Made by a program: the position numbers and the translations under genes | Shown: positions 29,879 through 46,954 of the stretch, one piece after another | Layout: every line of letters begins with the position of its first letter | Numbering within the stretch: the first letter of the stretch is position 1 | The notes under the pieces: generated by a model | Told to the model about the DNA's origin: nothing | The model's input: the letters and a program-made list of their open reading frames with translations, nothing else | Database searches by the model: none | NCBI GenBank assembly: GCA_001600695.1 | Contig: BCKQ01000004.1 | Location: 1,435,205 to 1,499,204, forward strand | DNA: 64,000 nt | Source: Ascoidea asiatica JCM 7603 | Taxonomy: Eukaryota > Fungi > Ascomycota | Reading direction: 5' to 3'

Positions 29879-30183
29879 CCCTTTAATCCCAATTTTTGTG
29901 CTTTTTGTCGTAAAGCAATTTAACAGCTAAACGAGGCACGTGAGTACCAAACACTGTAGGTATTTACAATTTGTCTACAAAAACTAAACGGGATCTTAGA
30001 AAGACCACGTGCTTTAAAGTAAACTACTTGAGTAAACAGTATTACTACATCCCTACTTAATGCGGGATTAATGTTATAACTTATTTTTAATAAATATTTC
30101 AATTTTTTCTACACAGGTTTACACGTGCTCGTAAAGCCCAAAATTGCTTTACGACAAAAAGCACAAAAATTGGGATTAAAGGG
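29879..30183. mobile_element. piggyBac-like MITE (305 bp)
   Basis: Perfect 43 bp TIRs CCCTTTAATCCCAATTTTTGTGCTTTTTGTCGTAAAGCAATTT at 29879-29921 and 30141-30183. ATAT flanks both ends (29875-29878, 30184-30187). The TIRs are homologous to the ends of the element at 42979-46801. Confidence 0.9.
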
Positions 30184-39701: not shown

Positions 39702-40775
39702 ATGTCAAAGATTGAGAATAAAAATAATATGAATAAGAATATTGAAGTACCATTTGCAAGAGTTGGGAACTCAGGATTGAAAATCTCAAGAATTATAGTT
39801 GGTTGTATGTCATATGGAAGTAAAACATGGGCAGATTGGGTAGAAGACGATGAAGAAAAAATAATGAAGATTCTAAAGAAATGTTATGAATTTGGATTAA
39901 GAACATTTGATACAGCAGATGTTTATAGTAATGGAGTTTCAGAAATTTTATTAGGGAAATTTATTAAGAAATTTAATATTAAAAGGGATACAATTGTTAT
40001 TTTATCAAAATGTTTTTTTCCAGTTAATGATCCAAATCTATCAAGAAATGATCCAAATATAAAAGAATTTGATTTAATTAATTGTAAAGGATTATCAAGA
40101 AAACATATATTTGAGGCTGCAGAAAATTCAGTTAAAAGATTAGGAACATATATTGATATTTATCAAATTCATAGGTTTGATCCAGAAACTCCACAATTTG
40201 AAACAATGAAAGCTTTAAATGATATTATTGAAAAGGGATACTGCAGATATATTGGTGCTTCATCAATGAAAACTTATCAATTTATGCATTTTCAACATTT
40301 AGCAGAATTAAATAAATGGCATAAATTCATTTCAATGCAAAATTATTATAATTTATTATATCGTGAAGAAGAAAGAGAAATGATTCCCTATTGTAATGAA
40401 AGTGAAATTGGATTGTTACCATGGTCACCAAATGCAAGAGGTATTTTAACTAGACCAGTTGAGAAGACTAAAGATTCGGTCCGTTTTAAATCAGATTTAG
40501 GAAGAATTAAAACTTTAAAAATCGATGGAGATTCAATTGAAGAATCAGATAAAGAAATTATCAATAGAGTTCAAATCCTAGCTACTAAAAAAGAAGTTTC
40601 CATGGCATCAATATCAACAGCGTGGGTTTTATCCAAAGGGTATTCGCCAATAGTTGGTATCAGCTCAGAACAAAGAGTTGAGGATACAATAAAAGCATTT
40701 GCAGTTGAATTAAGTAAAGAAGATATTAAATATCTAGAAGAACCATATTCCCCAAAGCCTGTTTCTTACTTTTGA
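39702..40775 (+). CDS. Aldo-keto reductase (aryl-alcohol dehydrogenase/YPL088W-like)
   Basis: Motifs GNSGLKIS, FDTADVYSNG, DIYQIHRFD, MQNYYNLLYREEEREM and PWSPNARG. Confidence 0.92.
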   Translation: MSKIENKNNMNKNIEVPFARVGNSGLKISRIIVGCMSYGSKTWADWVEDDEEKIMKILKKCYEFGLRTFDTADVYSNGVSEILLGKFIKKFNIKRDTIVILSKCFFPVNDPNLSRNDPNIKEFDLINCKGLSRKHIFEAAENSVKRLGTYIDIYQIHRFDPETPQFETMKALNDIIEKGYCRYIGASSMKTYQFMHFQHLAELNKWHKFISMQNYYNLLYREEEREMIPYCNESEIGLLPWSPNARGILTRPVEKTKDSVRFKSDLGRIKTLKIDGDSIEESDKEIINRVQILATKKEVSMASISTAWVLSKGYSPIVGISSEQRVEDTIKAFAVELSKEDIKYLEEPYSPKPVSYF

Positions 40776-41350: not shown

Positions 41351-42619
41351 ATGATGACATCTAAATCTGATACTTTCATGTTAATTTTTTTTGTTGCTGG
41401 TCTTTTAATAACCGGATGTTTGAATTCAATCTTCACAAAATATCAGGATAATCAATGTGTATCAAATTGTGATCCAGATTCACCAGGTGATAAAGAACTA
41501 TTTGAACAACCTGTTTTACAAACTCTACAGATGTTTTTAGGTGAATCCTCTTGCTGGTTTATTGTTCTTTTAAATTATTATCTAAGAAAAAGAAATTATA
41601 AAACCAATGCAATATATTCTAACTCTTCTGCACTTCAACAATCCCTTCACCAATCTTTTCAACAAGATCAATTAGCAGCGAATAATGAAGATTTGGTTTC
41701 TGCATTTCATGAAAAAAAACCTGTAAACTTTAAAAATTCAAGAATTTTATCTCTACCTGCCATTTGTGATATTTTAGGAACAACTTTGATGAATGTGGGG
41801 TTATTATATACTCCAGTTTCAATTTATCAAATGACAAGAGGATCTTTAGTCATTTTTGTTGCTATTTTTTCAATTATTTTCCTCAATAAAAAAATCAATA
41901 AAATTGAGTGGCTATCATTGATGATTGTCTTTTTAGGTGTTGCAATTGTTGGTTTATCTGGATCATCTGGGTCGTCTGAATCTTCTGCTTCGAAAACACT
42001 TCAAAATGTTCAATCTTCTACTTCAAATGAATTCAATTTAAAAGTTATACTCGGAATTTCTTTAGTTTTATTAGGACAAATTTTTACTGCTTCTCAATTT
42101 GTAATTGAAGAACACGTATTATCCAATCTAAAAATATCTCCGGAAACAGTTGTTGGTTATGAAGGTTCTTATGGAACTATAATTACTTTTATTTCAATGA
42201 TTATTTTTCATTTTTTAATTGGTAAAACTCCATTTAATTTAATTGAATCATTTTCTCAAATGTTTGAAAATTCAAAAATTTTACTATCTTCAATTGCAAT
42301 AATGCTTTCAATCGCATGTTTCAATTTTTTTGGAATCTCAATAACAAATAAATTGTCTGCAACTTCAAGATCAACAATCGATACTTGTAGAACTTTATTA
42401 GTTTGGTTTGTTTCAATGATATTAGGATGGGAAGTTTTCAAATTTTTACAATTATTTGGCTTTATTTTATTAGTGTTTGGTACTTTAGTATTCAACAAAG
42501 TAATATTTATTGATTCTTACTTACCTAATTTTTTCAGAGATGATATTAAAAATATTGTAAATTTTGATAATGAACCGTTATTAAACTCGGTAGTAGATGA
42601 ACAAATTGAAAGAATGTAA
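41351..42619 (+). CDS. SLC35F6-like / DMT-superfamily nucleotide-sugar-type transporter
   Basis: Motifs FEQPVLQTLQMFLGE, LPAICDILGTTLMNVGL, SIYQMTRG and SATSRSTIDTCRT; ~10 TM segments. Confidence 0.85.
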   Translation: MMTSKSDTFMLIFFVAGLLITGCLNSIFTKYQDNQCVSNCDPDSPGDKELFEQPVLQTLQMFLGESSCWFIVLLNYYLRKRNYKTNAIYSNSSALQQSLHQSFQQDQLAANNEDLVSAFHEKKPVNFKNSRILSLPAICDILGTTLMNVGLLYTPVSIYQMTRGSLVIFVAIFSIIFLNKKINKIEWLSLMIVFLGVAIVGLSGSSGSSESSASKTLQNVQSSTSNEFNLKVILGISLVLLGQIFTASQFVIEEHVLSNLKISPETVVGYEGSYGTIITFISMIIFHFLIGKTPFNLIESFSQMFENSKILLSSIAIMLSIACFNFFGISITNKLSATSRSTIDTCRTLLVWFVSMILGWEVFKFLQLFGFILLVFGTLVFNKVIFIDSYLPNFFRDDIKNIVNFDNEPLLNSVVDEQIERM

Positions 42620-43133
42620 TTCAGCATATAAGTTGGTAATATTATTTCGTGTATTCTTTGAATATTTACTGTATTGAACATCAAATAAATATATAAAAAT
42701 AAATACAAAAAATTTAATACTGTTTTTTATTGAGTTAATCAACCATAGTTCCAATCGTAAATAGAGTGTTTTGACGATGAGAAACAGGTCACAAACAAAG
42801 TGTTTTCAAGTCGCGGGCAAGGTTGATTTTTTCAAATAAATCACAAAATATGTTGAGAGGTATACATGCTGTTAATATCTGGAGGTGTACTATCTGTCAT
42901 TGAATGATTTTTCTTCAATCACGTTTTGTTACATAATCAACATAACTTACCAATATCAAAATTTACTATTAGAAATATCCCTTTAATACAACCATTTGTG
43001 CTTTTTGTCGTACCTGTTTTATTGATTATTACCCTCCTCTAAATTAGACATTTTAAATTTGAATTTGACTAAAAATTATTTGATTTACTATACTATTGAA
43101 TTGAATTTTAATAGTAACATATACAGTAATATC

Positions 43134-43296
43134 TATTCATTATAATTAACTACTAACTTAGAATGTATATTATATAGATATGTTTCTTCGTTCCACTTTT
43201 TATTTCTTATATATTCATTATAATTAACTACTAACTTAGAATGTATATTATATAGATATGTTTCTTTGTTCCACTTTTTATTTCTTATATATTCAT
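43134..43296. repeat. Near-perfect 78 bp tandem duplication inside the piggyBac-like element
   Basis: Units start at 43134 and 43212 and differ by one base. Confidence 0.9.
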
Positions 43297-43651
43297 AATA
43301 ACACATATTCTTTTTCATCATTTTTAACCAATTTTATTATATTGATAAATATAATATTTGAAGACTAAATTTGATATTTGCAAATTTTCGTCAAATTACC
43401 CAAAAATATTAGCTGTGTCATACAAACGGCACCCACCCACACCTCCGACAGTTGCGATGTGTTGAAAAATTTGAGCGTATTAAGAATTGTTTAGTTTTAT
43501 ACAACAATGCGGCATTTGATTCCTGTCTAATAAATCTTTTTGTAATCACTACAAAAGTTCTGAGCATCATGCAACATTATTAGGAACTTTGTAATTAAGT
43601 TTCCAAGATGCGGGATCTTATTAACATTTAGTAAGAACTTTGGCAATCATG

Positions 43652-43850
43652 CAAAGATTATAGAAAAAGTAACAAGTTTCTGGGAAATTTTACATTTTTA
43701 CAAAAATGAAGAGAATTGTACAGGATTTCATAAGAGCTGTGTAATTATTACAAAGTTCTTAGAAAAAGTAACAGGTTTCTGAGCAGTTTTACACTTTTAC
43801 AAAAATGAGGAGCACCGTGCGGGATCTCATAAGAACTCTGATATGATTAC
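43652..43850. repeat. Diverged 99 bp tandem repeat inside the piggyBac-like element
   Basis: TAGAAAAAGTAACA...TTTTACAAAAATGA recurs at 43661 and 43760. Confidence 0.8.
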
Positions 43851-44279
43851 AGGCTTCTCCAACATTTTAATTTTCCACTTGGAACTTTGCTACGGTAGCA
43901 AATATCCAGCAGTATTAGCCGTGATGCTGCGTACAGCTCAAGTTTGTTCTGTCAGGTGCGAGGCGGACCAATAAGTTATACTCTTACTAGATCTACTAGG
44001 TGCTAAACACGTCACAGCAGGTTGTTGGTTATTATTACCAAAACACTTAGGTTTATATTTTAGCACCCAAATAATTATTACCTTTTGAACACCGTCCATA
44101 TTCAACCCTTTTTGTGTTAAAGAAGCACGTTCCAACCCGAGAGCAGAAAATCAAAAATATTTATTAAATTATTGCTATTAAAGTAATTACAAATTAAAAA
44201 GGGATAAGGTAGTACCATTAAAATCACGAAGTTCTGCGCGCCATTTAGGTCGTGGGAACTTTAGTGCATGAGCACAGTT

Positions 44280-46495
44280 CGGTATCAAGATATAGGTCAA
44301 GCCAGCAATGAGGGCCAAGGTGGGCAGAGCAGCTCGGACACTCAAAGCAAGAAAACAGGACCTTCAAATGCTGCTTAGCTAAGTAGCAGTAACTATAACG
44401 GGCTTTCTACGGGAATTGATCGCATAATGAGACGCCGGATTAAGCAGGCCTATCCGCGTCGCAGCACTAGCACCGGAGTTTTCCTGAATATGTTTTTTAG
44501 CCACAATATCAATATCACTGAACTCAACAAAACTTAGTAACTTCTTACTGCACTTTTTTTTTCAAAAGCACGTGACTGTTAATAAGAGCCACATCAACCA
44601 AAAATAAAAAAGACTACTAAAGCTATTTTTGTAAACCCTCAAATGGGATGTGTGACTTGCTCAGTATTGGTCGGCAATATCCACAAGATTCAAGTGCTGG
44701 TTGTACTGATCGATAACCCTCGGAATAGAAACTTACGTTTGATTACCACTTTTGAAAATTTCATTAATTGAAAAATTAATTTGCCCTAAACTTTTGGTGT
44801 TTGGACGGAATTGTTTTTCACAACATTTTCATTTAGGTCATGGGCCGTACTAATCCGGAACTCAATGTTTCTGCTCATTAATGCAAAACATGCAACACCT
44901 TCATCATATTGATATCCAAGTTCGTTTCATTGTAAATCATTCTTTTTAGTTTTTATATCGGACAAGGTTTTAGCATAGGACCACTTGGATCAGTTAGTAC
45001 CAGTACCCCGAATGTCAACTTTATTCTTTAACCATTGAAATAATTTAATCCAAGTAAAATGATTATCCTTATAAAAAAATGGTACCGGATTTTTAACCTC
45101 CGCCTTTAAGAAACTGCCATAAAGATTCTGGGTTTGTATTATTTCCACGGGCTTTCGGGCTGCATATTATTGCTTCATCCCGTCTGAACTAACTGCGGTG
45201 TTGCTTCAAGATTTTTCTGGTGAGCTTGCGGAGTCTGCAGATATAACCCTATATATTGTTACTCTGTTCAATTATGTGTTTATATCCTTTTCTTGTTACA
45301 CTGCTCAAACAATATACAATGTTTGTTATTACATTACCGAACTACCACAACGTTATCAGAATATCGTAACTAAAAAACTGTACTGAATACAATTTTTTTC
45401 GAGCACCCTATACAGCCGCAAAATAGGCCACATCTGACTTTGTGGCGCTAATGTTATCAAGCTTTTGGACACCAATTAAACGAGGTGGTTTGTGTTTTTA
45501 GCTGTACACGAGGGGGTGGGTATATCTGACTAGGCCATTGCAAACATTGTATACCTTAGATGGATTGGTTTATTCGTTGCAACCGTACTATCTTGGGATA
45601 TGCCTTTAAATTTAATTTTCACTTCATGAATGGACACGGATGATCCTAAAATAAATACTGGGTGACTTGTCCTAACAATATGTTTTGCCAAAAAACTTAT
45701 ATTATCCCAAGGAAGCGTGACATCAACTACCATCTCTGTCAGATGTGACACGTGCAAAAAAGCTCAATATTATTAAAGCTGTAGTAGCTCATTGCTGATT
45801 TAATAAACGAATAATTTTACCAATTTCTTTATTAGAAATCTCTAATATTTGTAATGTTAATTGATCCAAATTAAATGAGAATTCCCAAAAGAATTGTAAT
45901 GAATACTAATTGGTCAATCCACCTTAGGTGTCATTACCAGCAGTTTGTAGGATTTTTGCCATTTATTTAAAAGAGTAATCCCTTAATTATTAACATTAAA
46001 GTCAATTGTAAGAATTAAGCAATTCGAAATGGATAGCTTGAGTAAATACTTTTACAATACAAAAAAGGATCTGGACAAACCCATTCTTTTCCCGAGGGTA
46101 CAGCTAATGCGGAGCCACTTTTGTGTGTTTTTTTTGTGACCTGTATAAGGCGTTTTCAAATATTTTTTGGTTGAAACCAGAAATGTGGATGCCATATCAC
46201 CAGCTATAACTGTCAAAAAATTTGAAGTGGTGACGTTCACCGTCTGGTGAAGAAGTACCATCAATGTGGATTCATTCTGTCACTTGTTCAACACTTTGAT
46301 ACCTGGAGGAGGTAAGCCCAATTTATCAAGCTGCATATCACCGGGAATCTCATAAAGATCTGTCTGGTCAAATATATTATTAAAAGCATGTGGTTCGGTG
46401 TCAAGGAACAGCTCGTCAAGATCATATTGGAACTGTTCCCTGCAATTTGGAGTAAGTGAATTAACTAGCTCATTAAGGTTTTCTGGAATATCCAT
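44280..46495 (-). pseudogene. piggyBac (PGBD/DDD) transposase pseudogene with multiple stops and frameshifts
   Basis: Ordered motifs on the minus strand: LGILI*FG..IRDF...SAMSYYSFNNI..LH (~45750-45890); SVSIHEVKIKFKG...NKPI (first-D block, ~45560-45640); YSDN (~45355); RISTAH (~44850); PRVIDQYNQHLNLVDIADQY (44664-44723); LVDVALINSHVL (~44570-44600); CFECPSCSAHLGPHCW Cys-rich tail (~44300-44350). Confidence 0.85.
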
Positions 46496-46954
46496 TGGAA
46501 AAGCTATTGATTTAATATTTAATATTTGATTATTGAACAGAAATTTTATTTTGGGTTATTACTGGCTTTTTATATTGAACTTCCGCCAAAATTGACGTAA
46601 AATGGGACTGTGCATCAAGCAATAACACGGTGCGCGCAATAAAAAACACCGCATAACCAAATAAGACACTTGATGCTTACCTCTCAAACCAGTTTGTTTA
46701 TTTAGCCGGGTTTTAAATACCTTCGCCATTTGAGACGCACGTGCATCGGTGAACCCCAAACCGGGTTTACGACCAAAAGCACAAAAGCTTGTATTAAGGG
46801 GATAGTTAATCAATCTTATTCAAATATTTATAAACAAACGAAAACAAAACAAGAGAAATATAGATGAAGTTTTATAAATTTTATTTTCTTTGAAATTAAC
46901 AAAACACATCAATATTATCTAACAAGCTAAATCTAACAAGAAAACAAAAGCACC

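Follow-up and report, generated by a model that had tools for sequence, protein, structure and literature searches.

An inactive piggyBac copy in the yeast Ascoidea asiatica and a mostly fungal clade whose insertions lengthen TATA-type target sites by 2 bp

The 64,000-nucleotide stretch of Ascoidea asiatica JCM 7603 DNA analysed here (the window) carries at 42979-46801 a 3823-bp element bounded by imperfect 34-bp terminal inverted repeats (TIRs), one at 42979..43012 on the plus strand, at the 3′ end of a transposase gene, and the other at 46768..46801 on the minus strand, at its 5′ end. This TIR pair, with four mismatches, is the longest inverted repeat within 7 kb; it starts with CCC at 42979, thereby showing the CC[C/T] start that is a feature of the piggyBac superfamily, ends with GGG at 46801, and is flanked by ATAT (42975-42978) on the left and ATAG (46802-46805) on the right, exactly as the preliminary description of this DNA had placed termini and flanks. 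The element interrupts a dispersed repeat of the host, the left half (42904..42978) and right half (46802..46944) of which, both on the plus strand, serve for comparison with empty sites. Contamination or misassembly was ruled out, as contigs from two samples of two studies join the element to a flanking transporter gene whose best match is from Ascoidea rubescens (63%). Allelic differences were present inside the element in the 2023 sample, and no empty allele at its site was found in the sequencing runs of those two samples.

A piggyBac transposase pseudogene, broken by about ten in-frame stops and by six or more frame changes, occupies 44227..46495 of the minus strand (ends approximate). 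The piggyBac motifs, including the YN..VDIADQ block at 44664-44732, lie in order on that strand, so that the motif series reported at first stands as to order but not as to completeness: the first catalytic Asp is now His (SIHEV, 45626..45628, where the paralogue on contig C29 has SIDEM), the second (KDNHF, 45065..45067) and third (YN..LVDIADQ, 44679..44681) being intact, all on the minus strand, whereas the C29 copy retains the whole DDD triad. The Cys-rich C-terminal domain is found at 44248..44406 (minus strand), and its C29 equivalent gives a weak match to PF13842 (E 0.06). Pseudogenes were read through with X at the breaks, and database searches used unbroken pieces only. The suggested check against the piggyBac profile PF13843 (DDE_Tnp_1_7) succeeded for paralogues but not for the window pieces by themselves: a Pfam profile scan of five of these gave no match, and in this genome PF13843 exceeded the cut-off only in the paralogues on C29 (59 bits), C15 and C32; the window copy is linked to the C29 copy (tblastn E 1e-22 to 1e-38, 51% identity). 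Taken together, the motifs, the TIRs, the PF13843 matches of the paralogues and the Ascoidea-like transporter gene alongside bear out the original assignment to a piggyBac-superfamily element in a budding yeast.

Three insertions, which the window copy would have taken up later, make up about 1.6 kb of the element. A non-piggyBac dispersed repeat of 1087 bp (43020..44106), with imperfect flanking repeats of about 6 bp, contains tandem duplications of 78 bp (43130-43285) and 99 bp (43626-43823); it has copies on C39, C16, C4, C17 and C14, and a piggyBac end on C20 lacks it. An insertion of about 316 bp (45104..45419) with CCGC direct repeats at its edges is missing from the C29 copy, and searches found no further copy of it. 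The remaining insertion, a solo-LTR-like repeat (45895..46095, plus strand), is present over 20 times in the genome, with TG...CA ends elsewhere and a decayed 3′ end here. Judged from its sequence, the window copy is a dead, ordinary fossil, and the value as an integration tool once proposed for it would lie only in intact relatives elsewhere.

The same family is represented in the window by a young 305-bp MITE (29879..30183, plus strand), the TIR of which matches the end of the C29 and C32 transposase copies. Four MITE copies are 94-99% identical to it, a likeness that indicates recent movement, and the piggyBac family in Ascoidea itself appears old, its subfamilies being 37-52% identical. 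The transposase that mobilised the MITE would have come from a copy since broken or absent from the assembly; the genome-wide search for intact copies that had been recommended found none among the best candidates scored.

The ends of 42 complete elements, comprising 10 independent yeast insertions in this genome and 32 from other fungi and metagenomes, were tabulated. TTAA was the target in none of the 42, and hence in none of the 10 yeast insertions, so that the claim of a non-TTAA target is upheld; the claim that this target is ATAT is not. The pattern xTAT|CC..GG|ATAy, with x and y free, is seen in eight of the 10 yeast insertions, the other two being off by one base, and TAT..ATA in 38 of all 42 elements. 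Direct repeats of 2 bp are present at the ends of 38 elements, of 3 bp at none and of 4 bp at one (1/42; a 4-bp duplication fits 1/10 of the yeast insertions). Positions -3 to -1 are 97-99% fixed and position -4 is variable, the T adjoining CCC being near-invariant (83/86 ends). Since conservation between insertions is confined to the inner TAT and ATA, ATAT/ATAG does not represent a duplication of 4 bp that has mutated once. Such a duplication of ATAT, decayed to ATAG, was the reading first offered, and it accommodates both the window copy and the window MITE, which alone among complete insertions is flanked by ATAT on both sides; however, young MITE copies are flanked by CTAT/ATAC and GTAT/ATAG, and as copies 94-99% identical nevertheless have mismatched flanking 4-mers, decay is not the cause of the mismatch. 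Real empty sites are, moreover, 2 bp longer than this reading predicts, and in the face of these and the end tables we find it scarcely credible.

Ten comparisons with empty sites, covering four insertion events, define the change in length on insertion. Overlap 2 scores best against all seven paralogues of the host dispersed repeat, which count as one insertion event only and most of which, among the yeast paralogues, read TATA at the site. It is also best for an orthologous empty allele in another fungus (L178 against L094), the left flank of which is 99% identical, and for L099; at a paralogous site (L034 against L085) overlap 0 is best and overlap 2 still exceeds overlap 4. In all ten, overlap 4 falls below overlap 2. 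The empty sites thus show a 4-bp TATA-type site that is lengthened by 2 bp once filled. Look-ups of neighbouring genes in relatives yielded one empty allele; among the relatives of L092 the site was filled or the sequence ended short, and L097 was represented by a single sample. For the MITE, no empty site was found for the window copy or the C46 copy, and the C13 copy has one weak empty-site paralogue.

These comparisons bear directly on the TA duplication published for Ti_tr1 of Tuber indicum, a single odd element of uncertain classification (Belfiori et al., 2013; PMC3864998). On that reading the element is TCCC...GGGA and the target TA only, as in Tc1/mariner elements; all filled sites can be read so, and the published truffle insertion of 2,351 bp agrees with it (PMC3864998). 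Its predicted empty site, xTAy, is nevertheless 2 bp shorter than that observed, and overlap 4 does worse than overlap 2 throughout, the 99%-identical allele included. Two well-matched empty sites contradict a TA duplication. For Ti_tr1 itself the lengths point both ways: 2,351 bp is the value expected from a TA duplication, whereas the difference of 2,348 bp between the idiomorph lengths in the same paper is nearer to the 2,349-bp insertion that we counted by eye from its supplement. We have rejected the TA duplication on the empty sites and consider it improbable. Ti_tr1 otherwise resembles the elements described here in its PF13843 transposase, its long TIRs and its lack of TTAA, and its printed ends, cTAT|CCC...GGG|ATAg, carry the same signature; it differs in its truffle host and in the published TA duplication, as against the clade-wide TATA with a 2-bp gain.

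Across the clade, elements have C..G ends, are placed as TAT|..|ATA and add 2 bp to a 4-bp TATA-type site. The window element is, in our judgement, probably an inactive cut-and-paste piggyBac copy of this deep, mostly fungal clade, in which a 2-nt stagger would duplicate AT. A DDD transposase would, like that of canonical piggyBac, cleave at the terminal G. It would then attach both 3′ ends to target positions staggered by 2 nt (T^AT^A), so that the central AT is duplicated; in the window, the duplicated AT would lie at 42977-42978 within the left target remnant TAT (42976..42978) and at 46802-46803 within the right target remnant ATA (46802..46804), both on the plus strand. Should excision take place via a 2-nt hairpin or overhang, TATA would be restored at the donor site and no footprint left.

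The sequences alone fit either duplication of AT or blunt insertion of T..A ends. In the latter case the element would be TCCC...GGGA, inserted at TA^TA without duplication, and filled and empty sequences would be identical to those expected from a 2-nt stagger; the near-invariant T beside CCC also speaks for it. Spy-type elements do insert without duplication. However, a Pokey-like outgroup member reads TTAA|CCC at one end (the one end of one outgroup element that was checked), and a terminal C is listed as the conserved piggyBac end in one survey (Bouallegue 2017; PMC5381638), so that by homology the T belongs to the target. Blunt insertion also demands a larger change in active-site geometry, and we think it unlikely, while allowing it an appreciable chance. 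Far less probable is that the flanks are written by the donor, a TAT overhang brought along from the former site overwriting the outer target base in repair, such that the true preference is looser (NATN-like). In canonical piggyBac the flank is indeed carried along, as a 5′ flap (PMC7351741), the L178/L094 orthologous empty allele has CATA in place of TATA, against TAT in the filled allele, and the L099 paralogue reads CAGA. Yet most yeast paralogues of the host repeat read TATA, and the CATA site belongs to a cluster of three C/T differences, with the filled allele showing two further C-to-T changes no more than 15 bp away, a pattern that speaks for local deamination or a RIP-like process.

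Returning to the preferred reading of a 2-nt stagger, the clade to which it applies is well separated in a transposase tree, in which 29 clade rows stand apart from 12 animal-type rows at 100/99 (Ti_tr1 is absent from this tree); in a second tree the clade has an SH-aLRT of 99. P0001, the top single-piece match, was dropped as nearest kin on being placed in the animal-type group. The same ends were found in filamentous fungi and in soil and marine metagenomes, and the altered specificity is thus not peculiar to yeast, as had been supposed. Nor is a recent transfer, the suggested horizontal acquisition, supported: the closest proteins are 25-30% identical over their length, none in the protein libraries exceeded 38% identity over the query piece, and the yeast branch is long and internally diverse.

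The clade shares with canonical piggyBac (Trichoplusia ni IFP2, PDB 6x67) and piggyBat (PDB 9c0f) the DDD motifs, the YN ahead of the third Asp, the Cys-rich tail, the CC[C/T] termini and the fold, which matches both structures. Canonical piggyBac has a 4-bp TTAA duplication, Tyr283 and TIRs of 12-19 bp, whereas the clade has neither of the first two and has TIRs of 34-60 bp. At the Tyr283 column, Tyr is present in 12 of 16 outgroup rows and in none of 54 clade rows, being replaced by Val/Asn in the yeast copies and Arg/Lys in most clade members. An insertion of about 15 residues before the third Asp is common to the clade, yeast copies included, and the spacing there is 42-54 residues against 18-34 in the outgroup, with one outlier in each set. 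In piggyBac, Tyr283 of the omega loop contacts TTAA and the hairpin, and cryo-EM indicates that active-site spacing dictates the 4-bp offset, which is tied to seamless excision (PMC7351741). A target-binding surface remodelled by replacement of omega-loop Tyr283 and by the ~15-residue insertion might set the narrower stagger, although we advance this step less firmly than the stagger itself; both differences are correlates of the clade and candidate causes only.

Fungal piggyBacs are known from Mucoromycota, Microsporidia and Pezizomycotina, among them a P. brasiliensis element with a 50-bp TIR (Bouallegue 2017, PMC5381638; Muszewska 2017, PMC5751038; Ivancic 2025, PMC13461360), and the portions of these surveys drawn on here name no Saccharomycotina host. 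ATAG, TTAT, ATAT and ATAA sites are listed in one and attributed to mutation (PMC5381638); the clade signature would account for them. Another filtered on TTAACC and tolerated as many as two mismatches, a setting under which most xTATCC ends go through undetected; its group 4 we infer to be this clade (PMC13461360). With the present data, piggyBac, including MITEs that have moved recently, joins the DNA transposons known from Saccharomycotina. In Repbase, the groups piggyBacA and piggyBacX have AT-rich sites other than TTAA (ATAT or ATA-N). The clade may already be listed there; if ‘ATA-N’ is the right flank seen here, the group has been catalogued and its duplication length perhaps misread.

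A 4-bp TTAA duplication has been treated as the defining mark of piggyBac, from which the TATA clade with its 2-bp gain departs, and the clade, with specific residues as candidates, lends itself as a natural test of what determines stagger and target choice. The restriction to TTAA is given as a constraint on piggyBac tools in one of the surveys (PMC13461360), and the intact relatives among the loci found (e.g. L092, L094 and L097) could supply a different integration site. Only tentatively, and with slightly less than even confidence, we propose that a widespread, unnamed piggyBac branch, undescribed as such (filamentous fungi, probable Glomeromycota, marine eukaryotes and a Saccharomycotina yeast), exchanged the 4-nt stagger at TTAA for a 2-nt stagger or a blunt cut at TATA via changes in the omega loop and the clade insertion, and that its intact members would be TTAA-orthogonal integration tools, possibly footprint-free. 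PiggyMac, the domesticated piggyBac-derived enzyme of IES excision in Paramecium, deletes DNA with a 4-nt stagger centred on TA. It resembles the clade in its derivation and in having a product boundary, the 2-bp TA, that is not TTAA, and differs in that it is centred on TA, whereas the clade has AT within TATA and its elements are mobile.

The longest pair of inverted repeats in the 7 kb around the element, 42973–43012 and 46768–46807, contains 34-bp terminal inverted repeats (TIRs) that start with CCC at 42979, end with GGG at 46801 and differ by four mismatches, confirming the CCC...GGG termini of the preliminary description, with ATAT on the left and ATAG on the right. The piggyBac motifs do follow in order on the minus strand in six-frame translation, but the series is not complete as had been claimed: His occupies the first catalytic Asp position (45626–45628, minus strand), and alignment with the best paralogue, on Ascoidea contig C29 (51 % identity), shows the reading frame interrupted by about ten stops and shifted at least six times. 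The Pfam profile PF13843 matches paralogues on C29 (59 bits), C15 and C32; the pieces of the window transposase, taken alone, match no Pfam profile. The window copy belongs to the piggyBac superfamily, being neither of TTAA nor of ATAT type, and is a dead fossil of a fungal clade that targets TATA.

Its total of 3823 bp holds three later insertions: a 1087-bp dispersed repeat (43020–44106), missing from the piggyBac end on C20; a single-copy insertion of about 316 bp inside the transposase (45104–45419), between CCGC repeats; and a solo-LTR-like repeat (45895–46095) whose family is about 225 bp long, has inverted TG...CA ends and is present in more than 20 copies, including loci L017, L019 and L020. 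The first (copies L004–L016) is unclassified, non-coding, 0.6–1.1 kb long and found at nine or more genomic places; it has ends TATTGA...TCAAC and no clear TIR, and several copies have imperfect flanking direct repeats of about 6 bp.

Ten independent complete yeast insertions have the left/right flanks ATAT/ATAG, ATAT/ATAT, CTAT/ATAC (twice), GTAT/ATAG (twice), ATAT/GTAG, TTAT/ATAA, ATGT/ATAA and CTAT/ATAG, MITE pairs with the same flanks (C13:91752/C13:111403, C32:67361/C41:25976 and C46/C28) being counted once; such identical flanks denote segmental duplications or duplicated assembly. A target other than TTAA, as first proposed, is borne out (0/10 here, 0/42 overall), whereas the proposed ATAT target is not, a 4-bp direct repeat occurring in one of the ten. 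The constant flanks are TAT on the left and ATA on the right; chance alone would place TAT at about 5 % of the positions of this DNA. Filled sites of this kind fit a TA duplication around a T..A element, an AT duplication within TATA, or blunt insertion into TA^TA, and it is the length of the empty site that separates these readings.

The window element splits a host repeat of about 300 bp that has intact copies elsewhere in the genome. Alignment to these paralogues is gapless when the two flanks share 2 bp, an overlap of two scoring best against seven of seven, and at the insertion point four empty paralogues have TATA and one CATA. For the window insertion these alignments exclude both a TA and a 4-bp duplication, provided that the allele it entered had not already lost 2 bp. 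The split repeat (42904–42978 and 46802–46944; L028:2900–3200, L080–L083) is AT-rich and dispersed in eight copies, those on C13 and C20 lying within or beside piggyBac relics. In each of two samples (2016 and 2023), contigs join the element to the neighbouring transporter gene, and no empty allele of the window-copy site was found in them.

Outside the yeast, a neighbour-gene look-up identified an orthologous empty allele (L178) in a second sample, its left flank 99 % identical to that of the filled allele (L094); the empty allele reads G-CATA-G and the filled one G-TAT|element|ATA-G, a gain of 2 bp. A paralogue comparison at L099 likewise gave a 2-bp gain; at L034 overlap 0 scored best and overlap 2 exceeded overlap 4. 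The filled L094 allele also differs from L178 by three clustered C-to-T changes, all no more than 17 bp from the insertion, where divergence elsewhere is about 1 %; deamination or RIP extending outward from the element may be responsible.

A search with a piece of the C29 transposase found distant relatives only (best 38 %), several of them fungal, including Morchella sextelata, and a profile search extended the set to Histoplasma, Talaromyces and two Glomeromycota. Loci of the fungal relatives together with 80 metagenome loci yielded 33 further paired-TIR elements, 32 with both flanks. Including the yeast set, TAT..ATA flanks occur in 38 of 42 elements, with direct repeats of 2 bp in 38, of 3 bp in none and of 4 bp in one. 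Positions −3 to −1 are 97–99 % fixed and −4 tends to C or G; at −4/+4, outside TATA, C..C or G..G pairs occur in 17/42, compared with about 10 expected from end frequencies. Further short-TIR elements, one from a Tara Oceans sample, have the same ends. The altered specificity is thus not peculiar to the yeast, contrary to what had been supposed.

Element ends, target sequence and the net gain of 2 bp are direct observations. On homology, the element would start at the conserved C, and the neighbouring T and A would therefore be target; strand transfer with a 2-nt stagger would then duplicate AT. We consider this probable; excision free of a footprint is predicted. Blunt insertion into TA^TA would leave the same filled and empty sequences, and we judge it considerably less likely. 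Duplication of TA is improbable, since the empty host-repeat paralogues and L178 show a 2-bp gain; flanks written by the donor are more improbable still, and a 4-bp duplication of ATAT, given its single repeat among the 42 elements, is the least credible.

In trees in which pseudogenes were read through with X at breaks, a branch (100/99) separates the yeast and all TAT-flanked elements from 12 animal-type transposases; a larger quick tree agrees with this split. The careful tree omitted the long or gappy rows P0043, P0040, P0004, P0149 and P0243. The five yeast copies form a single long branch (100/99), for which a sister position to the remaining clade has weak support (92/67). Yeast subfamilies share 37–52 % identity among themselves and 25–30 % with the closest outside proteins, which suggests that the family has long been resident in the yeast; the suggested horizontal acquisition thus shows no sign of being recent, although an ancient transfer is possible. 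One end of one outgroup element reads TTAA|CCC. At L187:1052–1705, an outgroup piggyBac element has a second ORF, which lies immediately upstream of its transposase and faintly matches RNase T (PF00929).

In Trichoplusia ni piggyBac, Tyr283 belongs to an omega loop that binds the TTAA hairpin as well as the melted TTAA target (PMC7351741). This column is Tyr in 12/16 outgroup rows and in 0/54 clade rows. The clade, yeast included, has about 15 additional residues ahead of the third Asp and retains the YN pair (Tyr439, Asn440), and a structure model of one intact member best matches piggyBat and piggyBac. Between these residue changes and the stagger there is a correlation, within a single clade.

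The Repbase groups piggyBacA and piggyBacX presumably use AT-rich non-TTAA sites, and the clade may already be catalogued there. Ti_tr1 of Tuber indicum was reported with PF13843, 52-bp TIRs, a 'TA' duplication and unclear classification (Belfiori et al., 2013; PMC3864998); its printed ends, cTAT|CCC..GGG|ATAg, are the clade signature, and its published lengths are compatible with more than one insertion geometry. Elsewhere, ATAG, TTAT, ATAT and ATAA sites are listed and put down to mutation (Bouallegue et al., 2017; PMC5381638), fungal piggyBacs are assigned to Mucoromycota, Microsporidia and Pezizomycotina (Muszewska et al., 2017; PMC5751038), and a group spanning fungi, plants and algae is described using a TTAACC filter allowing two mismatches (Ivancic et al., 2025; PMC13461360). 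The parts of the literature searched describe no TATA target that gains 2 bp, though Repbase may list the clade, and name no Saccharomycotina piggyBac. The host is unusual, as first remarked upon.

In the Ascoidea assembly (20.3 Mb, 71 contigs), transposase relics of the family lie on C29/C32, C13, C15 and C18, and no intact transposase was found. Those at L024 (C32) and L025 (C29) are near-identical duplicates, their 5′ part upstream of the transposase broken by an LTR retrotransposon whose frames resemble RT, RNase H and integrase. MITEs are of 202-bp and 305-bp types; four other copies are 94–99 % identical to the 305-bp copy at 29879–30183 and a fifth 86 %, which shows recent movement of the family. 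The host is a budding yeast, the flanking transporter gene being nearest to Ascoidea rubescens (63 %), with the next named yeasts at about 50 %. The neighbouring genes for an aldo-keto reductase and an EamA-type transporter (39702–40775 and 41351–42619) contain no CTG in 779 codons, consistent with a yeast of altered CUG code.
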